This document shows, in pieces, positions 9,274 through 56,938 of a DNA stretch of 64,000 nucleotides (the first letter of the stretch is position 1; every line of letters starts with the position of its first letter). Origin of the DNA: Eukaryota sp. TZLM1-RC (taxonomy: Eukaryota > Protista > Metamonada: BaSk clade). The notes beneath the pieces are model-generated. The model saw nothing but the letters and a program-made list of their open reading frames with translations, searched no databases and was not told the origin of the DNA. The stretch covers positions 496,001 through 560,000 of the forward strand of contig JAUPSS010000001.1 of assembly GCA_040285825.1 (NCBI GenBank), in the 5' to 3' direction. The position numbers and the translations under genes were made by a program.

Positions 9274-12200
9274 CTACAATTTACTAAGATATGAATCATA
9301 ACTAGCATCTGTGGCGGCCTTGATGCTGTCCAACAACTTTCCATCAGTGAGACTCAGCTTGGTGACACTTGAGCCTGACAAAGACCCCTTGAAATACTGA
9401 ATCATAGGATCAAAGTAACTATGATTCCCAACAGGACACATCAAATAATTGATACTCAATTCTTTAGACTTTGCTAGAATTGCATCAAATCTAGACTCCC
9501 AGGTACGACCACTGGGATCTTTGGGGTGATTATCACCTGTGCCACAGTTGAACCTGGAGCCATGATTGGGAGCATCACCAACAATAAATATCATACGGTG
9601 ACCCTTCGGCCAAGAGAGTTCCAGAGCTTTATCCAATCCAGTACAAATGTCTTCAGGGGCATCACCACCTCCAGCAGCTCTTACACTGCGAATTTTGCTA
9701 CTCAGAGTGGATAGATTACCAAAAGGCAGGACCTCAAAAGGTGCAGAATCACCAATGTCGCGATCTAGAGTTAACCAAACAAAGAAAACATACAAGCTAC
9801 AAATCCAAGATTAACCTTAACGGTAGAGGTGTAACCATACGAAGAAGCAGTAGAAGATAAGGATTTTTCAAGCTCTCCGCCCATTCGTATAATGTTTTCA
9901 GCAGTTTCTGCGATATAAGAACCCATACTTGCAGTAGCATCAAACACAAATACCGCGGACATGTCAGTGTTGATGTCTTGTTTCTTGATGAAATCCAAGG
10001 ATAGTCCAGTGGATGGTTTAACTGAAGGCTTTGGCTTCTTATCATAGCTTGAATAGGAGGGCGTTGACTTGGAATTAGATCTAGACTTTGAGTTGGAATC
10101 TTTAGGTTCCTCACCACCAATACCAAAAACAGAACCAATCTTACCTAAAATACCAGAAGCTGTTCCTTTAGAACCAGATAGTCTGGGCATGGGGATACCA
10201 GCAGGATCACTGTTAACTTCCCAATGGCCGTACTTCTTGTAACACCGGGGATCATTCTTGTTCTTGCACTTAGAACCGTTCATACATTTATAAGGAATGA
10301 GAGGAAGACTACCATGAGAAAATTGGAAGCGATGTTTTGGATCAACAATGTCTCTACAACGTTCCCCATGGCGACATTCTTCACGTTCCAGATGGTGGAA
10401 AAGGGCACAGTGGCTTGCATCATCCTTGTCCCTACACCCACTACCAAAGCGGCAAATGTGTACAAAATTAGAAAGGTGGGTTTGTCCAGCGGCAGTTTTG
10501 GCTTTGGAACCATCGTAGTAGTACTCACAGGTCCAAGGATTGCGACACAATGGTTTAGATTCAGTGGATTCAGAGGTGGTTGGTGTGGTTGGTGTGGTTG
10601 GTGTGGCATTCCTAGTTGAAGTAGGGGCCTTCTCCATGGTTTGATCAGCAATAGATTTCGCTGAATGTAAGTGACGCTGAGCAGCATTGACAAAAACTTC
10701 CTTAAATGAAGCATACCCGTCTCCATTCAGCTTAAAACCTATGCAAACATCCTTTGATTTGCACTTCAATTGAGCATGAACAAATTCTAATGGAGGGAAT
10801 TTGAAAGCAGTTTCAGCACCAATTCTTTCCAGCTTAATTTCCCCATTATCTCTGTTGATCACAAGCCCAAACTTTATATAAAGTTCCTTCATTCGAGAAG
10901 GGAAATACAACCGTTGATTAGCAATTTGTTGACCATCGTGGAGATTTGTTGAATTGAAAACAATGACGTTACCTTCATTAAATGAAAAACACATTCCTGA
11001 AGCCTTAGCAATGATTTGCAGATGAAAATTCGTGGAAGCATTAACTTTAAAGGCAACACGAATGGGGTAACCATTGTTGAAGACCTCACGCAACTGCAAC
11101 GAGTTGCATAAAGGTTGAGGAGTTAACACAAAGCTATAACCTTTGCTACACTGGTTAGCATCTTCACTGTTGGTGGACAAATCAGCAGCATGGTCTAAAT
11201 ACTCCTTAGAGCTTACGTCGCCATCAGTTAGAACTAAAAAACCAGGTGTTACGGCATTCAAATCATTGAGTTGTTTTTGGGCTTCAGCAGAAAGCTCTTT
11301 GAAAGTTGACTTTGGCATTAGAATATGTCGAACATAAGAAAATGGAATCATTGGAGCTAAATGGCATTCAAAAGTGTGGTGACTATCAATAGAGAAAATA
11401 GTTTCAAGGCACATTTGGCATGTTACGGTGGACACGCCAACTTTCCTCTTTTCAGCAACCATTCTGGCTAAATCCCAAGCCAACACTTCAGATGCCTTGA
11501 TACAGCCCATATTTTGAATTAAGGAATAGTAAAATCTGATACGTTCGTTAGAATGGGTCTTGGACGGTAACTTGATGTAACTTCTGCCGGCATCATCCAA
11601 ATTTCCTTGGCTATAGTATAATGTTGCAGCAGTAAGGTGAACAAAAGAGGCAGGGTGCTTTGAAAGTTCATCGGAAAAGAATACAGAGATTGGTCCATAT
11701 CTGTGGAAGGTATTCGGACCCAAGTTGGTAAAGACAGTGTGGTCTGTTTTGAGAGCCCTGTCCTTATCGTATCCAATACCAACCTCCTCAGAATTAGCCT
11801 GTTGGTTCAATGTTATGGCAGCTTGAGCAATACCAGTAGCGAGCTGATTCAACTCCTTAAGAGCCTCATTGGGAAGATTCAATAACTTTTTCGATTCTTG
11901 TTGGGCAGCAACATCTACTTCCTGCCCACTAAGCCTTGAGAATTCATTTTTAGCAGCTGTAGCAAGATAATCTGCAACAGTTGAACGATTAGAGAACTTG
12001 TGCAGTCGGTGGTGATTGCGTGCAATGGATTCTATAGTATCGGAGTTGCCTAGCTTATTTTTCATAAAATTAAGAGAGTAAAAGTTGCCATGGGCTAATG
12101 AAGATAAGAATGGTTCTACCTTGATTCTATGGGTAGGCTTAAAACCTAAAATAAACTGGGCGATGCTGGCAATATTTTCGGGAACAGACTTTGTTCCAGA

Positions 12201-15200
12201 GGGTACAACAAACTTTCCAAGTTTAATGGCATTTTCGTAAAAATTAATCTCATGATCAGCAGATAATGAAGGTGGTCTCAATGAACCAACGATTTGGAAA
12301 ATCTTGCTAGAGGGATGTGAGAACATTTGCAAATGATTTGGATCACTCTGCTCAGTGCAACCAACTCTGTGACGGCATTCGTGGCGAGGATGGGGTGCAT
12401 TGTTGTGTTGATAGAGAGCTAGATGATTGTTATCAGTAGAGGAACAATTCTTATCTGGGCAGTTCAGACGGTTCAAATGAATGAAATGCTTAATATGGTC
12501 TGGGGACTTGTCAGTGCAACGAGTACCGTGACGACAAACAAAACGTTCATAGACCATTGGACCTGAACCACCGACAAAAGGATCTTCTGCAAGACGTACA
12601 TGGTTGAAATTATTGACGTGTTCTGAGGTAAGATCAACGCAATTCTTAAAAGGACATTGAACTCGATCGTGGTTATAAAGACATTTTTTGTTTTTTTCAC
12701 GACAATTGGTACCATTGGGACAGGAAGGTCGATGATAAAACGAAGCACGGTGTTTCTCACTTAGATTCTGACAATGAGGTCCGTCCCTACACGAAGGTGC
12801 ATGTTCAAAGGCAGCATCATGTCCAGGATCCTGATGATGGTGTAAACAATTCGTGAAATATTTACAAGGCTTGGTGTGAAAGAACAGCGCTGTATGGGTT
12901 TTTGACGAACGTAGAGAACAGTCAGTTCCATTGGGACAGATTGGGAGATGAATGAATCTTTGAGCATGATCTTTGTCTTTCAAATTTGTGCATTTGTTGG
13001 GTAACTGGGGGCAAGGAAGTTTCAAAGATTTGAGGTTGGTGGCTACAAGATCAGTTTTCAAAAGCGACGCACATTGATTGAGCTGGTCAGAAAATCCACT
13101 AAATATAATTGAATCAAAAAACTTGTGAAAAATGGAAAGTACAAATGATAAAACAGTCATTGCACCGGGAATAGGGTTTCTGAAAGCTCCACAACCAAGA
13201 GGGCAAATCACTAAATGAGTAATTCCGTGTTTAATGGCAGCTAAAAAGACACAAGTCCATCTCTTGTATAGTAATTGTAAATCATCAAAATGAGCATAGT
13301 CTTCACCAAAGTTTTCAACTTCTGAGATTTCTGGCTCCTGAGGAGCAGCAGTACTTATAATGGTAACTCTTTGTGGTTTTTCAAGCAATTGACATCCAGT
13401 AGCTTCAGTTGTTTTGAAAATTTCCACATTTTCGGTAACTACAACATCAATTTTAGCTGTTTTCCATGGATATGCTACCCTTTGGCCAGAAACTACCTGT
13501 CCACCATACTGTTCAGGATCCAAAGCAGCACCTAGAGTTGTTCTTCTGAAAAGTGATTCTTCCTGAGCACTGGCACCCGTGAGATAACCACCACCAGGAT
13601 GTTCCTCATTGGCCATATTGAGGACACCAACAACTCTGTTCCTGTTGGGTTTGATAGAAATAGCGCATTCAAGACAGTCTTTGGGCATGGGCTGGACTGA
13701 GGAGGTCTTTTTCTGTTCCAGAGGCGAAAAACTGTGGTTAATCACATCATCAAAGGAGTAGACATGGTTAATCAAATTAGGAACGTGAAGTTTAACCTCG
13801 GTTTTGTTTTTTGTGTTGTTATCAAAGATGGCATATTTGTTGCCTCCCACAGCACTAATTGTATGAGCTTGGACAATACATAGCGCCAGTCTATACGCAC
13901 CATTAGAACGTCGTCTTATGTTGTTGACATCAAACTTAGAAAGCACTGTCTCCATGAAACTTCCATACTTGTTGATCAATGTATTATAGCTTTTAGCAAG
14001 TGTAAGATGAGGTGATTCTTCTTTCAACAGCATTGGTAACGGAAAGCCAAAATGAAGACGATTAACAAAAGCAACAATTGATTCAACTTCCGAGTCTTCC
14101 CTTAACTTAAAAGAGGACTTCTCATTGATTGGACATCTATTGTGTTCAGTGAGTAAAATTAAACGACGGCCGAAAGTAACCAACCAGCATCTCTTTTCCG
14201 TAAGATCAAATGTTGTAATAAGAGCAGCTTTTGCAAGTTCCAAATCAGTTTGTGGTACGATAGCGAGCTCCCAAGCATGCTTAATCTTAAGATCAGATGC
14301 AGCACCTCGATGGATGACCACGATAAAGTCATGGATTTGCTTAGATGCGGAATTAAGTGATTGAGAGAGATTCGTTTCGGATGACTTGGAAAACACATCA
14401 AATTTGGCAATTGATATTCCCTTTTTGTTCTCATTTACCAATTCAATGACACAATTAGGAAGTTTGGATTGGAGTGACTTTTGTATAGTTGAGGCGTTCT
14501 TCCCACTAGAATAAATGGCTGTCAACTCAATCTTTTCATGATAAACGTTGATATGCATCTCGCTTGCACTAAGCCAAATGTTATTATCTCCAAGAATCAG
14601 ATCTAGAGCACGGACTGGTTCTACTTTTCTACAATTAAATGTCACCAGAAAGAATTGTGGGGAGATTTCTTGAACAGAAAAAGTACCTCCATCCTGAAGA
14701 ATCATTTTGGCAACTTCTTCTACACGATGCAGAGGAAAGGGCTTTTCAGGTTGGAAATACAAAGTGCAGGAAAAACTTTCATACTGCGCAACTTGTCTTT
14801 GAGGTAGTAGATTGCGGAAAACATGGACTTTGATGTTGGTAAACTCTTCAATGCAAGGTCTGATCTGAGGTTCTGCCCAAATACGACGCAGCGATTCATC
14901 TTGCATATCCTTCTCTTGGAGGAAAAGATAAGCTTGTGTTTCTTGATAGGAGGTCATATCTCTATCTATGGGGAAAAGATTGTTTTGTGAAGGATCTGGC
15001 TCCGGTTCTGAAGATGGTTCAGGATGGACAGAAGGGAAAGGGCATGGCATAGGATCATCATAGTGACTACTTTCGGTTTCGGAACTACTACTAGTATCGT
15101 GTACAACATTGTGTGGATTGACGTTAATTAATGAGGGGAACAAACTAGGGCCTGGTTCAAACGCTACATCTTCGGGAGGCTCAAACGGAGAGCTTTCAGC

Positions 15201-15380
15201 AGGGTCGGATAAATCCAATACAACAGTCTTGTGACTTGGATTGAAAAAATCGGGGAATGGTGCCTTGACCATCAATATCCTATTCTTGTTCAATTGGTGA
15301 GGAGGAGAATTATAAGCAAAAATTTGGTGAAGTTTACACATTTCAATGATTGTTACATTTGCACTTCTCCACACAAACAT
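9274..15380 (-). CDS. Multidomain protein: bacterial-type PARG (DUF2263-like) + 13 PBZ-like zinc fingers + putative ADP-ribosyltransferase-like domain + vWA; one 29-nt intron (9765..9793)
   Basis: VLNMANEEHPGGGYLTGASAQEESLFRRT and PLGCGAFRNP (PARG). Repeated C-x5-C-x6/7-H-x5-H fingers. MIDAS-type FDATASM. Splicing GTATGT...TTAACTCTAG restores VAYRDIGD and joins the 9274..9795 ORF (GGGDAPED, IVGDAPNHG). The true start may be MVKAPFP at 15272. Confidence 0.85.
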
Positions 15381-16227: not shown

Positions 16228-19200
16228 ATGGTAAAGTCTTTTCCAGGATACCATTCTTGTCATGAAGTTGCTGCTGGAGCTTTTGGAGTAGTATACAAAG
16301 CTGTTTCTTGCAAGGATCAAAAACTTTATGCTATTAAACAGTTTTTCCTTCCTGCTGATAACCCTGAAGCATTGATGCGTGAGATTGCACCCATGAAACT
16401 CGACCATCCAAATATCTGTCGTGTTATTCGCCATTTTCGTCATTTTGATGGTCAGCATACCAGCGATTGCTTGGTGATGCCGTATTATGAGACGAATCTC
16501 ACCAATTTGATATATCATTCACATATTCGTGAAGATAACTCTCCAGGAGAACCTTTAGAAAATGACCTTGCATGGAAAATATTTTGGCAATTAGTAGAAG
16601 GTATACATTTTTTACATCAAAAAGAAATATGCCATAGGGATCTAAAGCCGGAGAATGTACTGCTGGATGAGCACCTCAATGTAGTGATTTGTGATTTTGG
16701 TTTGGCTAAACCTTTTGACAACATCAACGGCAACCCTTTTAATACATTAGCCACTCCAGCCTACTATCCCCCAGAACTAATTGCATCCGGTCAATATGGC
16801 CCAGCTGCTGACTACTTTGCATTAGGGGTGATTTTCTACGAGATGTTGGTAGGAAAAATGCCTTATGATCCCCTTCTCCCAGATCGTACACTTGAGCCAG
16901 GTGTGCTATCCAAGGTAAATGACCCAAAAGCAAAACAAATCATCGAGAACCTCTTGAATGTAAGACATGAACCAAGATCTTATTCTTTTGATAATCTAGT
17001 CAGGTGGTTACGTCATCGCTTCGATTCTTCATTCCCAACATCATCAGTTTATGAAGTCAACAATGATGATAACGGTCATGTAGATTTGATCGGTTCGGCA
17101 CGTGGTAGTCTTGCCACAGAGGAACCTAGTGCTCCTCCAATTCAAGAAACAACAAATTCTTATACAAACGACAGTCATGGAAGAGGCAACTCTTTTGTTA
17201 CTAAGCCGGAAGGATTGTACCAAATTAGTAAGCTCGACAGTATTCCCAAACACACTCTTCAAGTATCACAACCTTCTTCAGTCACCAAAGAACAAACAAT
17301 CTCAATACACTTTGTTGGTGAGGATGACGTTGAAAGAGTAACTTCTGTTCTTCCATCAATGTTTAGTTCAGTGCAACAAACTGGCAAGTCTGATTATCGT
17401 AATTTCTCTTGTTTGGAATTTCTCGTTTATTACACTTCAAATGAACATTCTGTCACTCTTAAACAACTCGTTAGGAATGGACTGGCCAGTAGTGTTGATT
17501 GTGGCCTGCTTAATTACCCTGTTATTAAAGGTAAAGCTGATCCGTTTCCTGAACACGTTTTTGAGGTTGTTCTTCATCCCTATCTTCGTTATTCGTCAAT
17601 TATTCAAGCAATTAATGTTTCAACAGTTGGTAAAAAGCACAGATTTTATGTTTTAAATGAGCGGAGGTTGCTGATCATGACTTCTAACTATGGTGATCTA
17701 TCCCCAGGGTCTAGCTTTTCCATAAGATTTAACGGACAGAAATGCACTTTTTGCATAGTTTATATGAAAGAGTATAACCCTCTGTCGCCTATTCCAGTAC
17801 TGTTTAATGACGAAACAGCCTCTGTTGATTTGGTGAGGGATACTTTCAGTTGTGTTGATGGGTCATACAACCCTTCACTCAATTTGGAATTATTATCATT
17901 ATATAGTGATCGCAGATACTTTTCCCTAAAACATTGTTTATTCATTAACTGTGTCTCCCAAGCCCACACCTTCTATTGTATTGAAAAAGGAAGGTACTTT
18001 ACTGGTGATGGAGCTAGCAACAGTTTGGAAGTTCAATCAATCACAAATTCTACTTACAGCTTTCCTCAATTAGTGCAATCTGTCTCTGGAACTCAGTTAC
18101 CACAATTGTATTTCAACGACAACACTTTTTGCCTCCAAGAACAGGATTGTTTGGAATGCATTACCCAATGGATGCCCTTGAACGACAAAAAAGTTGGGGT
18201 TTTGTGTATGGGAAGCCCGGACTCTCCTGGAGGTGAGTATTCAAGTGGATCCAATTCCCAAGAATCTTCTCTATTCCGCAGGACTACCTTGATGGCTGGT
18301 TTCGCAGGAGAACAGTTTGGTTCTAGAATCCATTCTTCCAGTCAACGTGTCCCTTATCCATGGGATTCTAACAACATTGATGTTGTGGTTACTGAAGGGG
18401 TAGAAGTCATCAAGAGTACAGAGGTTGATGGCTTAAGACCATTACCTTCCCCTTTTGAAATTGTTGTTTTAACCTCTTCTGCCCCTCAACATCCAGCTAT
18501 TAGAAAACACTTTAAATTTGGTCAAGATTTTGCTAAATTGGATGACTTAGAATTACTCTACAAGAGATGGACCTCTGTCTTTTTAGCTGCCATTAAGCAC
18601 GGAATTACTCATTTGGTGATTTGCCCCCTTGGTTGTGGATTTCTCAAAAATCCTATTCAAGGTAGCATGGAAGCATTGAAAAGTTTATTAATGGTTTTCT
18701 CGCCCTATTTCAGAAGTATTTGTTTCTCAGCTTTTGAAAACTTTTCACAGTTTTCTAATTTATTAAAACCAGAGTTGCCCTTACCTTCAAGACCTCCACA
18801 AATGTTCCACGAACTATTCATCCTCCCTTTTTTCACTCCAGGGTTAGGGTTATCTAGAGTTCTTCCTTGTTGTAAAAAGGGTTCAAAATGCGGAAAGTTC
18901 AAGAATATTCTTTCTCATCAAGCGTTTTTCTCTCATCAAGCTAGTACTGATTTGGTTCTCAATTGCCCTAATCCAATCAAGTCTATTGAACTTCCCACTC
19001 GGCGTCTTCTTAGGTCCCGCTACCAGATCTCGTTTCACTCAAATCCTTTCTGTTCCTTGGAAATTGCATTTTCCTTTGAAAGGGGTGAAAATTATTCCGG
19101 TTTTTGTGTCAAATTTGAATCTGGGCATGTCTCGGTATTCAATTCACCAACTTCCTCCATTGAAGATGGTCCTGTAATCAGCCAACAACTATGTGATTCC

Positions 19201-19404
19201 CTCTGTACATCTTCACTTGCACGGTTTGTTATGTTATTTTACCAAATTGATGGTGACTATTTTGTGGAAGTCCAAGTGTCCGACAATGGTTGTCTTCTTG
19301 CACCACTTTCATTGTCTCCACAAGAAAACGAAATGACCTTCCTACATGCCAGAATGACTGAACATAATGCCACTTTATTGGGATTTAAATATGGGTGCTT
19401 ATAG
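16228..19404 (+). CDS. Ser/Thr protein kinase fused to a PARG-like macrodomain with altered catalytic motif and one PBZ-like finger
   Basis: YAIK, HRDLKPEN, CDFG, PPE, DYFALG. Then GVLCMGSPDSPGGEYSSGSNSQESSLFRRT, PLGCG and CKKGSKCGKFKNILSHQAFFSH. Confidence 0.9.
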   Translation: MVKSFPGYHSCHEVAAGAFGVVYKAVSCKDQKLYAIKQFFLPADNPEALMREIAPMKLDHPNICRVIRHFRHFDGQHTSDCLVMPYYETNLTNLIYHSHIREDNSPGEPLENDLAWKIFWQLVEGIHFLHQKEICHRDLKPENVLLDEHLNVVICDFGLAKPFDNINGNPFNTLATPAYYPPELIASGQYGPAADYFALGVIFYEMLVGKMPYDPLLPDRTLEPGVLSKVNDPKAKQIIENLLNVRHEPRSYSFDNLVRWLRHRFDSSFPTSSVYEVNNDDNGHVDLIGSARGSLATEEPSAPPIQETTNSYTNDSHGRGNSFVTKPEGLYQISKLDSIPKHTLQVSQPSSVTKEQTISIHFVGEDDVERVTSVLPSMFSSVQQTGKSDYRNFSCLEFLVYYTSNEHSVTLKQLVRNGLASSVDCGLLNYPVIKGKADPFPEHVFEVVLHPYLRYSSIIQAINVSTVGKKHRFYVLNERRLLIMTSNYGDLSPGSSFSIRFNGQKCTFCIVYMKEYNPLSPIPVLFNDETASVDLVRDTFSCVDGSYNPSLNLELLSLYSDRRYFSLKHCLFINCVSQAHTFYCIEKGRYFTGDGASNSLEVQSITNSTYSFPQLVQSVSGTQLPQLYFNDNTFCLQEQDCLECITQWMPLNDKKVGVLCMGSPDSPGGEYSSGSNSQESSLFRRTTLMAGFAGEQFGSRIHSSSQRVPYPWDSNNIDVVVTEGVEVIKSTEVDGLRPLPSPFEIVVLTSSAPQHPAIRKHFKFGQDFAKLDDLELLYKRWTSVFLAAIKHGITHLVICPLGCGFLKNPIQGSMEALKSLLMVFSPYFRSICFSAFENFSQFSNLLKPELPLPSRPPQMFHELFILPFFTPGLGLSRVLPCCKKGSKCGKFKNILSHQAFFSHQASTDLVLNCPNPIKSIELPTRRLLRSRYQISFHSNPFCSLEIAFSFERGENYSGFCVKFESGHVSVFNSPTSSIEDGPVISQQLCDSLCTSSLARFVMLFYQIDGDYFVEVQVSDNGCLLAPLSLSPQENEMTFLHARMTEHNATLLGFKYGCL

Positions 19405-53788: not shown

Positions 53789-56700
53789 ATGAATCATGAC
53801 CACTTTGCTCAACAACTTCCTGACTATGAGGATTTCAAACTTATTGGACAGGGGTCGTTTGGCACAGTGTACCGAGCGAAAAGTAAAGAAACTAACCAGG
53901 TGTGTGCTATAAAGATTGTGGCCAATCGCCCAGACGAGATGGACAGATGGGAGAAAGATGTTGAACCAATGACCCTTAACCATCCCTCGATCTGTAAAGT
54001 GCTAGATACCTATGTATGGAAGGAGAGCTACTGTGTTGTGATGCCTCTGTACAACTCCAATCTAACAAAACTCATATATGGAGTCCCAGAACGTACTAAT
54101 CTCAACCCAGGCACAAAAATTGACCCTATTTTAGCATGGAAGATGTTTCATCAGCTCGTAGAAGGTATCAATTACATGCATGGTCGCGGTTTTGCCCATA
54201 GAGACCTTAAGCCGGAAAATGTACTTCTAGATAATGATAACAACGCAGTGCTGTGTGACTTTGGTCTTTCCAAACGTTTTACAACTTTATCTGCTGCGCA
54301 GTTCCGAACACTTGCAACTCCAGCTTATCATGCTCCCGAGATACTCAAGGCTTTGAATACATCTAGAAACCAACCTACTGTGGAATATGGACCAGCTGTG
54401 GATTATTTTTCTCTGGGTGTCATATTTTATGAAATGATGGTTGGACAACTTCCTTATCATGTTGACGGTCATAGAACTCTCTCGCCCGAAAGGGCAGAAT
54501 TGATTTGTAAAATTGATCGTGTGGCAGGGCGTTATATTGAAGGCCTTATGTCTAATGATCACGATACACGAACCAAAATGTTCAATCAAATTGTGAAGGA
54601 AATGCGGAGTTCATTAGATGATGTTGGTTCCAACCCTTCGCCATATCATTTTTACAAAAAACAACTCACCGAACAGGGTTGTAGTCCTCTTTCTGTTATT
54701 TCGCATAAGAAATATGGCGGCCACACTGGAAAATTAACAGAGAATTTAATGCATATATCGACTGTCCCAGTGATTAAACATTCACCAAGGATCACACCTA
54801 ATAGCAGGGAAAAGATGGTCACCAAACAACAAACAATCTCAATACACTTTGTTGATGAGGATGACGTTGAAAGAGTAACTTCTGTTCTACAATTAATGTT
54901 TAATTCAGTGCAACAAACTGGTAAGTCTGATTTTCGTAATTTCTCTTGTTTGGAATTTCTCGTTAATTACACTTCAAATGAACATTCTGCCACTCTTGAT
55001 CAACTCGTTAGGAATGGAATGGCCAGTAGTGTTGATTGTAGCTTGCTTAATTACCCTTTTATTAAAGGTAAAGCTGATCCGTTTCCTGAATACGTTTTTG
55101 AGGTTGTTCTCCATCCCTATCTTCGCTATTCGTCAATTATTCAAGCAATTAATGTTTCAAGAGTTGGTAAAAAGCACAGGTTTTATCTTTTAAATGAGCG
55201 GAGGTTGCTGATCATGACTTCTAACTATGGTGATCAATCCACAGGGTCCAGCTTTTCCATTAGATTAAACGGACAGAAAATTAAGCTTACTATTATGTAC
55301 AGACATCAGTATAACCCTCTGTCGCCTATTCCAGTACTGTTTAATGACGAAGAAGCCTCTGTTGATTTGGTGAGGGATACTTTCAGTTGTGTTGATGGGT
55401 TATACGACCCTTCACTCAACTTGGAATTATTATCATTATATAGTGATCGTAGATACTTTTCCCTAAAACATTGTTTGTTCATTAACTGTGTCTCCCAAGC
55501 ACACACCTTCTATTGTATTGAAAAAGGAAGGTACTTTACTAGTGATGGAGATAGAAAACATTTGAAACTTCAATCAATAAGAAATTCTACTTACAGCTTT
55601 CCTCAATTAGTGCAATCTGTCTCTGGAACTCAGTTACCACAATTGCATTTCAATGACAACACTTTTTGCCTCCAAGAACAGGATTGTTTGGAATGTATTA
55701 CCCAATGGATGCCCTTGAACGACAAAAAAGTTGGGGTTTTGTGTATGGGAAGCCCGGACTCTCCTGGAGGTGAGTATTTAAGTGGATCCAATTCCCAAGA
55801 ATCTTCTCTATTCCGAAGGACTACCTTGATGGCTGGCTTCGCAGGAGAAAACTGTCCGTCTAGAATCCATTCTTCCAATCAGAGTGTCCCTTATCCATGG
55901 GATTCTAACAACATTGATGTTGTGGTTACTGAAGGGGTAGAAGTCATCAAGAGTACAGAGGTTGATGGCTTAAGACCATTACCTTCCCCTTTTGAAATTG
56001 TTGTTTTAACCTCTTCTGCCCCTAAACATCCAGCAATTAGAAAACATTTTAAATTTGGTCAAGATTTTGCTAAATTGGATGATTTAGAATTACTTTACAA
56101 GAGATGGACCTCTGTCTTTTTAGCTGCCATTAAACACGGAATTACTCATTTGGTGATTTGCCCTCTTGGTTGTGGAGTTCTCAAAAATCCTATTCAAGGT
56201 AGCATGGAAGCATTGAAAAGTTTACTCATGGTTTTCTCGCCTTATTTCAGAAGTATTTGTTTCTCAGCTTTTGAAAACTTTTCAGAGTTTTCTAGTTTAT
56301 TAAAACCAGAGTTGCCATTACCTTCAAGACCTCCACAAATGTTCCACGAACTTTTTCTCCTTCCTTTTTTCACTCCAGGGTTAGGGTTATCTAGAATTCT
56401 TCCTTGTTGTAAAAAGGGTTCAAAATGTGGAAAGTTCAAGAATATTCTTTCTCACCAAGCGTTTTTCTCTCATCAATCTAGTACTGATTTGGTTTTAGAT
56501 TCTGCTGATGAACCAATTTCTTTTGAACTATCGGCATACAAGGTATTGAAGTCACCTTTCAGGGTAACTTTCCATTCTGCTCCCTTTTCTACCATTGATG
56601 TTGCCGTTTCTTTTGAAGGCAGGGGTAATTTCTCTGGTTTTTGTGTTTGTTTCAGAGCTGGCAACGTTTTAGTCTATAATTGTCCTATTCCAACTGATAA

Positions 56701-56938
56701 CACAGCTCCTTGTTCCATACAACAACTCTGTAGAGATGGAGCTGACAATTCTATTCCAGTTGAACACTCTATATCTCTCTCAAAAAGTGGGAATGATTAT
56801 TATTTAGAGGTAGAACTAATTGGTCATTACAATGCTAGAGCAATGCTTAACTTATCTCCACAGACTGAACAGATTTGCAAACTACACTTGAGTTCGATTG
56901 ATTCTGCTGCTGTTTTAGGCTTAAAGTATAGTTCATGA
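53789..56938 (+). CDS. Ser/Thr kinase-PARG-like macrodomain fusion (paralogue of 16228..19404)
   Basis: GQGSFG, CAIK, HRDLKPEN, CDFG, APE. Then PGGEYLSGSNSQESSLFRRT, PLGCG and a PBZ-like finger. Confidence 0.9.
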   Translation: MNHDHFAQQLPDYEDFKLIGQGSFGTVYRAKSKETNQVCAIKIVANRPDEMDRWEKDVEPMTLNHPSICKVLDTYVWKESYCVVMPLYNSNLTKLIYGVPERTNLNPGTKIDPILAWKMFHQLVEGINYMHGRGFAHRDLKPENVLLDNDNNAVLCDFGLSKRFTTLSAAQFRTLATPAYHAPEILKALNTSRNQPTVEYGPAVDYFSLGVIFYEMMVGQLPYHVDGHRTLSPERAELICKIDRVAGRYIEGLMSNDHDTRTKMFNQIVKEMRSSLDDVGSNPSPYHFYKKQLTEQGCSPLSVISHKKYGGHTGKLTENLMHISTVPVIKHSPRITPNSREKMVTKQQTISIHFVDEDDVERVTSVLQLMFNSVQQTGKSDFRNFSCLEFLVNYTSNEHSATLDQLVRNGMASSVDCSLLNYPFIKGKADPFPEYVFEVVLHPYLRYSSIIQAINVSRVGKKHRFYLLNERRLLIMTSNYGDQSTGSSFSIRLNGQKIKLTIMYRHQYNPLSPIPVLFNDEEASVDLVRDTFSCVDGLYDPSLNLELLSLYSDRRYFSLKHCLFINCVSQAHTFYCIEKGRYFTSDGDRKHLKLQSIRNSTYSFPQLVQSVSGTQLPQLHFNDNTFCLQEQDCLECITQWMPLNDKKVGVLCMGSPDSPGGEYLSGSNSQESSLFRRTTLMAGFAGENCPSRIHSSNQSVPYPWDSNNIDVVVTEGVEVIKSTEVDGLRPLPSPFEIVVLTSSAPKHPAIRKHFKFGQDFAKLDDLELLYKRWTSVFLAAIKHGITHLVICPLGCGVLKNPIQGSMEALKSLLMVFSPYFRSICFSAFENFSEFSSLLKPELPLPSRPPQMFHELFLLPFFTPGLGLSRILPCCKKGSKCGKFKNILSHQAFFSHQSSTDLVLDSADEPISFELSAYKVLKSPFRVTFHSAPFSTIDVAVSFEGRGNFSGFCVCFRAGNVLVYNCPIPTDNTAPCSIQQLCRDGADNSIPVEHSISLSKSGNDYYLEVELIGHYNARAMLNLSPQTEQICKLHLSSIDSAAVLGLKYSS

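Follow-up and report, generated by a model that had tools for sequence, protein, structure and literature searches.

A protist protein joining PARG, PBZ-like finger and ADP-ribosyltransferase-fold domains in one polypeptide

DUF3626 is carried by the bacterial effector SopF (PMC6682159). In the ADP-riboxanase OspC3, the residues E326 and H328 are required, and the related CopC features the triad H137-F183/F207-E325 plus H327 (PMC9239266). Deamination by OspC3 needs the Asp residues D177 and D231. Bacterial-type PARGs also strip ADP-ribose from the 2'-OH of RNA as well as the 5'-phosphate termini of both RNA and DNA (PMC11833690), whereas protein-proximal ADP-ribose is not efficiently cleaved by PARG enzymes (PMC4245714). 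In the bdelloid rotifer Adineta vaga, a bacterial-type PARG with PBZ repeats is noted by Perina et al. 2014 (PMC4245714), with reference to Slade et al. 2011.

We analyzed a fusion gene of Eukaryota sp. TZLM1-RC (Skoliomonas, Metamonada), a free-living anaerobic flagellate. The window, the whole stretch of DNA that was analyzed, comprises 64,000 nucleotides. The fusion is a single gene in the nuclear genome of Skoliomonas sp. TZLM1-RC. The open reading frame list gives an open frame of 1869 aa (9771..15380, minus strand), and a direct reading of the sequence confirmed the 29-nt intron of the original prediction, placing it at 9765-9793 with GT..AG ends; its removal restores the frame as VNLGFVA-Y-RDIGD over the joint. 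The resulting product (1862 codons, one split codon, and 162 codons, 2025 in total) matches the 2025-residue product of the deposited annotation GCA_040285825.1, which starts at window position 15380. An alternative 36-nt intron was rejected, as the frame meets a stop.

The domain order is an N-terminal region, a PARG domain, nine fingers, an ADP-ribosyltransferase (ART)-fold domain, a beta-rich domain, four fingers, and a vWA-like domain. We hold these domain identities with high confidence. The features are as follows.

9274..15380, minus strand: whole gene, two exons, product of 2025 aa (open reading frame list, translation, splice joint, and deposited annotation)
9794-15380, minus strand: exon 1
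9765-9793, minus strand: intron of 29 nt, GT..AG, interrupting a Tyr codon within the part that encodes the vWA-like domain
9274-9764, minus strand: exon 2 (stop codon 9274-9276)
aa 1-150, minus strand: low-complexity leader rich in Pro, Ser, and Glu
13941..14933 (aa 150-480), minus strand: lineage-specific N-terminal region, possibly two ferredoxin-like/RRM-like modules
13056..13898 (aa ~495-775), minus strand: bacterial-type PARG macrodomain (Pfam, NCBIfam, and PDB sequence matches)
13557..13595 (G596-E608; E607/E608), minus strand: PARG catalytic loop GGG-x7-QEE (motif and PARG alignment)
12315..13013 (aa 790-1022), minus strand: finger cluster 1, nine PBZ-like CCHH/CCCH fingers (pattern C-x4-6-C-x6-8-H/C-x3-5-H)
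11241..12188 (aa 1065-1380, 316 aa), minus strand: ART-fold domain of an unannotated family with a helical insert of ~100 aa (AF2 and structure searches)
H1084 (12129-12131), F1217/Y1228, E1338 (11367-11369), and H1340 (11361-11363), minus strand: candidate catalytic residues (order and conservation)
10581..11228 (aa ~1385-1600), minus strand: beta-rich domain C-terminal to the ART domain
10224..10547 (aa 1612-1719), minus strand: finger cluster 2, four PBZ-like fingers
9277..9980, minus strand: C-terminal vWA-like domain, intron-split (weak Pfam VWA matches and homology)

The bacterial-type PARG signature that had been noted earlier is present at 13557-13595, where the catalytic loop reads GGG-YLTGASA-QEE and is intact (aa 596-608). 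Its identity is backed by Pfam (PF10021, E 4.4e-17, 63 bits with a cut-off of 23.5), by NCBIfam (TIGR02452, 69 bits with a cut-off of 50), and by PDB sequences, with matches to the PARGs of T. curvata (3sig, E 5e-12) and D. radiodurans (2e-9). In the alignment with these two enzymes, the GCGAF diphosphate loop is matched as well as the catalytic loop.

The ART-fold domain matched nothing in Pfam, PDB sequences, PADLOC, or NCBIfam. A sequence search of 1.84 billion representatives assembled a family of 139 relatives, and one of 37 relatives gave a chance-level DarT match (E 0.13). The AF2 model built from 115 sequences is very confident (pLDDT 96.1, pTM 0.92) and places the domain among the ARTs. 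SopF with NAD is the first Foldseek match (probability 1.00). A second look with VIA ranks SopF (Z 11.1), DarT (10.5), and OspC3/CopC (9.2) ahead of a fall to 6.8, and an exhaustive VIA search of 48,161 PDB chains, run without Foldseek, fills ranks 1-9 with ART-superfamily members (DarT Z 10.3, Tpt1 Z 8). In the ESM Atlas, the domain matches clusters of DarT (PF14487) and of DUF3626. TM-scores are modest (0.36 to 0.56) because ~100 residues form the helical insert. At the level of the predicted fold, the proposal of an ADP-ribosyltransferase domain thus holds.

The three motif strings quoted in the original prediction (aa 1082-1102, 1213-1229, and 1335-1355) are all present and coincide with the most conserved columns of the 115-sequence alignment. 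Within them lie H1084 (conserved in 72 of 76 sequences), F1217 (113/115), Y1228 (109/112), E1338 (103/108), and H1340 (104/108), which are candidate catalytic residues assigned from order and conservation alone.

The earlier label "DarT-like" fits the fold (Z 10.3), but its DNA-targeting connotation is not supported, because Pfam gives no DarT match, SopF/DUF3626 is at least as close, and the E-x-H motif is that of the protein-modifying OspC3/CopC. E-x-H is not known as a feature of DarT. It is quite possible, though less likely than not, that the domain modifies proteins like SopF and OspC3/CopC, possibly with OspC-like chemistry, and that the analogy with DarT, which modifies DNA, misleads on the target. 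SopF comes first in all structural searches, E-x-H is common to OspC3 (E326/H328) and CopC, and the large helical elaboration followed by a putative substrate-binding domain recalls SopF and OspC3/CopC. However, DarT lies less than one Z unit from SopF, which amounts to a tie, and DarTG likewise has a macrodomain hydrolase fused to its ART (7omu; one ESM Atlas match). Furthermore, bacterial-type PARG acts on nucleic-acid ADP-ribose (PMC11833690) and not on the protein-proximal unit (PMC4245714), so that a mono-ADP-ribosylated protein, if this were the product of the ART domain, would escape erasure by PARG.

All nine plus four Cys/His fingers are located where they had been predicted, and their PBZ spacing occurs far above chance. 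A loose regular expression finds 12 fingers in the protein, with 0.22 expected (2000 whole-protein shuffles, maximum 3), and nine in cluster 1, with 0.78 expected from shuffles of this Cys/His-rich stretch alone. By direct reading, 10 of 13 fingers have C-x5-C and 12 of 13 have H/C-x5-H, the exact spacing C-x5-C-x6-H-x5-H being found in two; two fingers are of the CCCH type, and one finger of cluster 2 holds a 16-residue insert. In APLF, ADP-ribose is contacted by an aromatic residue (Tyr) two positions past the first Cys and an Arg after the second Cys (PMC6264785). Direct reading finds such an aromatic residue in 3 of 13 fingers and such an Arg in 3 of 13. The predicted likeness to APLF-type PBZ thus extends to spacing, but the single fingers stay below the PF10283 cut-off (E 0.05-0.95, at most 14.1 bits; cut-off 22.7) and mostly lack the contact residues.

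The label "PAR reader" is plausible. Somewhat less probable, but possible, is that the fingers are nucleic-acid-binding CCCH/CCHH modules or plain structural spacers. This would fit the sub-threshold score of every scanned finger, the two CCCH fingers, the missing Tyr/Arg contacts in most, and one finger that is better fitted by Nab2-type and PAN3-type CCCH models than by PBZ. On the other hand, three of the ten scanned fingers match PBZ and no other Pfam family, the C-x5-C and H/C-x5-H spacings prevail, and PBZ domains that are significant in Pfam occur in relatives of the same layout (P0014, 28.0 bits; P0045, 26.0 bits; cut-off 22.7). The published A. vaga PARG with PBZ repeats (PMC4245714) also points to PAR readers.

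The ART domain itself is probably catalytically active. It is unlikely that it merely binds or senses NAD+, ADP-ribose, or PAR, or hydrolyzes NAD+, which would make the protein essentially a targeted PARG. Such a role would agree with the absence of sequence matches to active ART families in Pfam, PADLOC, and NCBIfam. In CopC, H137A and F183A/F207A have little effect and E325 alone is essential (PMC9239266), so that the triad pattern by itself is weak evidence of transfer. However, the H, F, Y, E, and H positions are near-invariant in more than 100 sequences from metamonads to rotifers, which argues for catalysis over mere binding, and the close structural neighbors are all active NAD+-using enzymes.

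At the C terminus, the predicted MIDAS was found as a MIDAS-like D-A-T-A-S (D-x-T-x-S; aa 1814-1818, window 9927-9941). The vWA assignment by Pfam stands in part: exon 2 alone matches PF25106 VWA_4 (E 5.8e-6), but at 26.4 bits falls 0.6 bits short of the cut-off of 27. The relatives P0006, P0007, P0010, and P0014 show similarly weak VWA_4/VWA_2 matches at their C termini, exon 2 shares 46% identity with P0006 (E 3e-50), and the vWA-like family profile found no match among PDB sequences. It is very improbable that exon 2 belongs to another gene or is an artefact of the annotation, with the protein stopping in-frame at 9771-9773. Paralogue P0003 does lack a vWA and ends past its second finger cluster, but a reverse-transcriptase gene follows its 3' end, compatible with secondary loss. 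In the Skoliomonas gene, the first strands of the vWA and the MIDAS-like motif are already encoded by the end of exon 1, the deposited product includes exon 2, and homologues with an uninterrupted vWA-like domain share the same C terminus. In P0006 (Eukaryota sp. GEM-RC1), the end of exon 1 and the whole of exon 2 align to adjoining parts of one unbroken domain.

Two further regions are specific to the lineage, and neither has a Pfam match. The N-terminal region (aa 150-480) has homologues only in the skoliomonad proteins P0003 and P0009; its AF2 model is poor (pLDDT 55.6), and its top structural matches (Z at most 7.5) are generic beta-alpha-beta-beta modules, from which two ferredoxin-like/RRM-like modules are possibly present. 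The beta-rich domain is conserved only in the skoliomonad paralogues P0003-P0008 and P0011; a language model points to Methyltransf_FA-like beta-sandwich clusters, but at a score of 0.87, which is under the trust level.

A PARG domain occurs in 41 of the 139 family representatives, always N-terminal to the ART domain, and in 25 of the 26 members of at least 1500 aa. Its carriers include Kipferlia, Pharyngomonas, Diphylleia, Adineta, Rotaria, and Didymodactylos. Because other protists and bdelloid rotifers share this PARG-fingers-ART core layout, the protein may represent an undescribed self-contained ADP-ribosylation system.

Taken as a whole, a modular ADP-ribosylation protein with the ART domain as active transferase is the reading that we favor on balance. 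Here we infer that the ART domain acts as a transferase and on what kind of target, that the fingers bind PAR, and that PARG reverses the ART domain's own product. The ART domain would bind NAD+ via the conserved His1084 and Phe1217/Tyr1228, and Glu1338 (with His1340, as in OspC3/CopC) would transfer ADP-ribose to the target. The fingers may tether the protein to partners that are ADP-ribosylated or are nucleic acids, ADP-ribose would be trimmed or removed by the PARG domain, and the vWA may dock the fusion protein onto a partner protein. That writer (ART) and eraser (PARG) act on the same mark is a tentative inference, less likely than not.

Among known enzymes, SopF (DUF3626, PF12294; a Salmonella ARF-activated ART) is the closest in structure (Z 10.9-11.1, 181-182 aligned residues), and DUF3626 clusters are also among the ESM Atlas matches. 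However, identity is 8-9%, Pfam DUF3626 does not match the Skoliomonas domain, and SopF is a secreted bacterial effector acting on a host protein, whereas the Skoliomonas domain sits within an endogenous eukaryotic protein. The compared DarT structures (PF14487; Thermus sp. 2.9 7omv/7omy, M. tuberculosis 7yk3, and the fused Thermosipho africanus DarTG 7omu) share the ART fold (Z 9.1-10.5 across 160-168 residues) and the motif order, in which a His strand near the N terminus leads into a helix and the strand with the catalytic Glu comes late, and fused DarTG also carries a macrodomain hydrolase on the same polypeptide. In contrast to DarT, the Skoliomonas domain has no significant PF14487 match, a ~100-residue helical insert, and the E-x-H motif; the hydrolase of DarTG is of the DarG/TARG1 type, whereas that of the eukaryotic, multidomain Skoliomonas protein is of the PARG type and N-terminal. 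OspC3 and CopC share the fold (Z 8.4-9.2 over 184-195 residues) and the residue order H...F...E-x-H, but the Skoliomonas protein is without their calmodulin-binding N terminus and ankyrin domain.

The PARG domain resembles the T. curvata and Deinococcus radiodurans enzymes (PF10021/TIGR02452) by a significant sequence match and aligned GGG-x7-QEE and GCG-x-F loops, but is one domain in a 2025-aa eukaryotic protein. The fingers resemble APLF/CHFR-type PBZ (PF10283) in their CCHH ligands, in the C-x5-C and H-x5-H spacings, and in forming tandem arrays, whereas they score under the Pfam cut-off and the ADP-ribose-contacting Tyr/Arg are mostly replaced. The A. vaga protein UJR32654.1 (P0061, 2297 aa) belongs to the same family, with PARG at 701-988, 14 PBZ-like motifs, and the same ART-fold domain at 1467-1678; the cited text on A. 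vaga (PMC4245714) names PARG and PBZ only, the ART-fold domain, which has no Pfam model, being unmentioned there. Compared with this protein, the Skoliomonas fingers are more degenerate, and the Skoliomonas protein adds the beta-rich and vWA-like domains.

The gene lies on the minus strand (window 9274–15380; contig JAUPSS010000001.1) and derives from the isolate TZLM1-RC of Skoliomonas, an anaerobic flagellate of the metamonads that is haloalkaliphilic (PMC11603281). Its two exons were taken from the ORF list and translated, and the intron was identified by direct reading of the sequence:

9771..15380, minus strand: open frame of exon 1, 1869 codons
9274..9795, minus strand: open frame of exon 2, 173 codons
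9765–9793, minus strand: 29-nt GT..AG intron, splitting a Tyr codon

Read directly across this intron, the frames join as VNLGFVA-Y-RDIGD. An alternative donor, giving a 36-nt intron, reads into a stop and was ruled out. The modeled length (1862 + 1 + 162 = 2025 residues) equals that of the deposited product exactly, and the deposited start lies at window 15380. The exons were searched separately and not as one spliced protein. Against residues 1150–1438 of P0006, a homologous protein from Eukaryota sp. GEM-RC1, the tail of exon 1 aligned to positions 60–123 (E 7e-13), and exon 2 aligned to positions 132–289 (46% identity, E 3e-50), the latter alignment extending to the C terminus of both proteins. 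These neighboring stretches mark the predicted exon products as abutting halves of a single domain. The original prediction of a vWA part joined through a 29-nt intron is supported, with the frame restored, the deposited length reproduced, and a homolog spanning the joint. The features of the single polypeptide described there (PARG, 13 fingers, middle domain, and vWA) are confirmed, and their interpretation finds support in fold and architecture.

The PARG domain (residues ∼495–775) is recognized by PF10021 (microbial-type PARG) on residues 503–624 (E 4.4e-17; 63.3 bits, cut-off 23.5) and by NCBIfam TIGR02452 (69.1 bits, cut-off 50), and a PDB sequence search returned the PARGs of T. curvata (3sig, 5e-12) and D. 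radiodurans (2e-9). The catalytic loop comprises G596–G598, seven residues, and Q606-E607-E608 (residues 596–608, window 13557–13595). Both glutamates are present, and the loop is in register with the same loop of 3sig. Likewise, the diphosphate-binding loop (GCG-x-F-x-N) reads GCGAFRN, with GCGVFGN at the aligned place in the T. curvata enzyme. With both loops aligned and both cut-offs exceeded, the intact GGG...QEE signature noticed originally is confirmed, and the domain displays all sequence hallmarks of an active bacterial-type PARG.

The middle domain (residues 1065–1380) is nameless in the curated libraries Pfam (searched with this piece and 37 relatives), PADLOC, and NCBIfam. PDB sequence searches, with the single sequence as well as with a profile, gave chance matches only (e.g. 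phaseolin and IFT81), and word-indexed searches, whether started from the domain or from the A1 profile, found only two proteins each. A full HMMER search with residues 1031–1610 against 1.84 billion representatives recovered 139 relatives with a common core at residues ∼1070–1375. A second match of the ART profile, in the N-terminal region, was dismissed as noise (domain E-value 36).

AlphaFold2 modeled the domain from a 115-sequence alignment with a pLDDT of 96.1 and a pTM of 0.92. When this model was compared with the PDB by Foldseek, SopF with NAD came first (probability 1.00), followed by OspC3 and CopC. VIA, a structure comparison that yields Z scores, ranked the Foldseek list as SopF (Z 11.1), DarT (10.5 and 10.3), E. 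coli DarT1 (9.3), and OspC3/CopC (9.2), below which the scores fall to Z 6.8 with matches to the helical insert only. Run without Foldseek on 48,161 PDB chains, VIA filled ranks 1–9 with members of the ADP-ribosyltransferase superfamily, namely SopF, DarT, OspC3, CopC, DarTG, and Tpt1 (yeast Tpt1, Z 7.7). In the ESM Atlas, the matches were a rotifer cluster that contains PBZ, along with clusters of DUF3626 and of DarT, one of the latter combining DarT with Macro. Since SopF carries DUF3626 (PMC6682159), Atlas and PDB point to the same families. We consider the assignment of the modeled domain to the ART fold, including the split β-sheet core, to be solid, in agreement with the original proposal.

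The most conserved columns of the family coincide with the three strings by which the middle domain had first been recognized. In the family alignment, H1084 is found in 72 of 76 sequences, F1217 in 113 of 115, G1221 in all 115, Y1228 in 109 of 112, E1338 in 103 of 108, and H1340 in 104 of 108. H1084, F1217/Y1228, and E1338 (95–98% conserved) are located in or beside strands of the AlphaFold2 model and follow one another in the correct order for the H-Y-E type of the superfamily, whose NAD+ pocket is lined by a His of the first strand, an aromatic side chain of the middle strands, and a Glu of the late strand. OspC3 requires E326 and H328, and CopC features the triad H137-F183/F207-E325 plus H327 (PMC9239266); the residue order H...F/Y...E-x-H is thus common to the OspC family and the Skoliomonas domain. 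From order and conservation, we infer that these candidate catalytic residues are competent.

The scores of DarT, SopF, and OspC3/CopC lie within about 2 VIA Z units of one another, which amounts to a tie. The writer had been called "DarT-like," which is correct for the fold (Z 10.3–10.5 to solved DarT, rmsd 3.3–3.5 Å, 163–166 of about 200–220 residues aligned) but not for the family, as the DarT profile PF14487 does not match the domain and hits one of 37 relatives at a chance-level E of 0.13. The likeness to SopF is also structural only, and the SopF family PF12294 (DUF3626) is absent among the Pfam matches of the 37 members. Taken together, the structural tie and the lack of a significant Pfam match to DarT or DUF3626 mark the domain as a family of its own within the ART superfamily. 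Pfam holds no model for the domain, and no mention of it was found in the literature searched, although an earlier description is possible. For a rotifer, a PARG with PBZ is already on record (PMC4245714). We regard the finding as a new ART family inside a partly known architecture.

The fingers are arranged as a group of nine (residues 790–1022) between the PARG and ART-fold domains and a group of four (residues 1612–1719). A loose pattern finds 12 of them, compared with 0.22 expected in shuffles. The exact spacing C-x5-C-x6-H-x5-H occurs in two of the 13, C-x5-C in 10, and H/C-x5-H in 12. The middle spacer measures 6 to 8 residues (16 in one finger), and two fingers are of CCCH type. Four of 10 fingers scanned gave any PBZ match, and the best single finger (14.1 bits, E 0.048) remained below the PF10283 cut-off of 22.7 bits, which is passed by two relatives of the same layout (P0014 and P0045). 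In the PBZ of APLF, Y381, Y386, and R387 contact ADP-ribose (PMC6264785), whereas these aromatic and Arg/Tyr positions are mostly replaced in the Skoliomonas fingers: an aromatic residue occupies C1+2 in three of 13 fingers (His in three more), Arg follows C2 in three, and Tyr in none. Thus, the 13 PBZ-like fingers predicted originally are confirmed in number and place, and such fingers are far more numerous than expected by chance, but neither the profile cut-off nor the APLF contact residues confirm them as PBZ. The Pfam-significant PBZ of the relatives and the PBZ repeats already published on the bacterial-type PARG of Adineta vaga (PMC4245714) favor a PBZ ancestry, and the kinship suggested by the finger sequences is real but loose.

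The N-terminal 480 residues are lineage-specific, and residues 150–480 (13941–14933, minus strand) have relatives only in skoliomonad proteins. The model of this region is poor (pLDDT 55.6) with generic ferredoxin-like structural matches only; in this low-confidence model, residues 150–480 look like two or more β-α-β-β (ferredoxin/RRM-like) modules. A 2H phosphoesterase, considered for a PHLTLA motif, was rejected, as a second H-x-T motif and a Pfam match are both missing. Directly after the ART-fold domain follows a β-rich domain (10581–11228, minus strand), which is confined to seven skoliomonad paralogs, including the kinase-ART proteins of GEM-RC1. It gave no family match and at most a weak language-model lead, and could be a substrate-recognition module of the ART-fold domain. 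The C-terminal vWA-like domain carries a MIDAS-like variant, D-A-T-A-S at residues 1814–1818 (D-x-T-x-S instead of the standard D-x-S-x-S; D-[AV]-T-[GY]-S in relatives). Exon 2 alone narrowly missed the VWA_4 cut-off (26.4 versus 27 bits). Relatives with the whole vWA-like domain reach 18.7–25.7 bits, and their vWA profile found no match in the PDB.

The combination of PARG and ART-fold domain recurs in distant eukaryotes. A PARG domain is present in 41 of the 139 ART-fold representatives, N-terminal in all 41, and in 25 of the 26 representatives of at least 1500 residues; PBZ-like motifs occur in 78 of the 139. The proteins with a named source come from Skoliomonas TZLM1-RC and GEM-RC1, from Kipferlia bialata, Pharyngomonas kirbyi, and Diphylleia rotans, and, among bdelloid rotifers, from Adineta vaga, Rotaria, and Didymodactylos; the vWA-like C terminus is also found in GEM-RC1, Kipferlia, and environmental members. 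The persistence of this fusion, as read from the protein sequences, argues that the two predicted enzymatic domains work together. Kinase-ART or kinase-PARG-ART variants (P0004 from GEM-RC1, P0009 from a skoliomonad record, and P0013 from Kipferlia) suggest that the ART module was shuffled in a signaling or conflict context in metamonads.

The same genome encodes a paralog, P0003 (1726 residues, 76% identical; JAUPSS010000010.1, L001 6001–11181 and 13400–14899). It cannot be the ortholog of another species, because the window comes from the same assembly (GCA_040285825.1). P0003 comprises PARG, fingers, ART, and β-rich domain, followed by a low-complexity tail without vWA, and is therefore useless for confirming the splice. 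Insertion of a retroelement may have removed the vWA part, as a gene for a reverse transcriptase follows immediately downstream.

The window also holds two paralogous genes for a protein kinase joined to a bacterial-type PARG domain (16228–19404 and 53789–56935, both plus strand), the first head to head with the studied gene at a distance of 847 bp. Their catalytic loops both carry GGE...QES in place of GGG...QEE. Judging from this loop, the two proteins are probably inactive hydrolases, which may still bind ADP-ribose.

To our knowledge, PARPs, ecto-ARTs, sirtuins, and Tpt1 make up essentially all eukaryotic writers of ADP-ribosylation. Another ART family, conserved between metamonads and rotifers and nearly always joined to a PARG of bacterial type, would extend this list, and a writer and an eraser in one chain provide a ready functional hypothesis. 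The ART-fold domain would also explain an old oddity, the bacterial-type PARGs with PBZ arrays scattered in few eukaryotes, and would give an identity to the C-terminal half of the Adineta vaga proteins, a long stretch without annotation in proteins that have been known since 2011. Transferase activity, target, PAR reading, and a closed writer–eraser cycle are predictions only; the support reaches as far as fold and architecture.

Bacterial-type PARGs remove ADP-ribose from the 2′-OH of RNA and from 5′-phosphate ends of RNA and DNA (PMC11833690), whereas the protein-proximal ADP-ribose unit is not efficiently cleaved by PARGs (PMC4245714). A PARG-type eraser would be better suited to a product that is a nucleic acid or a polymer than to a mono-ADP-ribosylated protein. 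Because bacterial-type PARGs have recently been shown to reverse RNA/DNA ADP-ribosylation (PMC11833690), the family makes it possible to ask directly whether endogenous, reversible nucleic-acid ADP-ribosylation exists in eukaryotes. A rather unlikely reading is that PARG, fingers, and ART correspond to fused DarTG as an endogenous system of eukaryotes: the ART-fold domain would mark DNA or RNA (at a base, a 2′-OH, or a phosphate end), the PARG would reverse the mark, and the fingers would read it. If true, nucleic acids would undergo a PARP-independent cycle of ADP-ribosylation, used in genome defense or damage signaling by metamonads, heteroloboseans, CRuMs, and bdelloid rotifers.

The Skoliomonas protein bears a likeness to two kinds of known systems. 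The E-x-H motif and the helical elaboration of its ART-fold domain are reminiscent of the protein-modifying SopF and OspC enzymes, and its fusion to a macrodomain hydrolase resembles that of fused DarTG.
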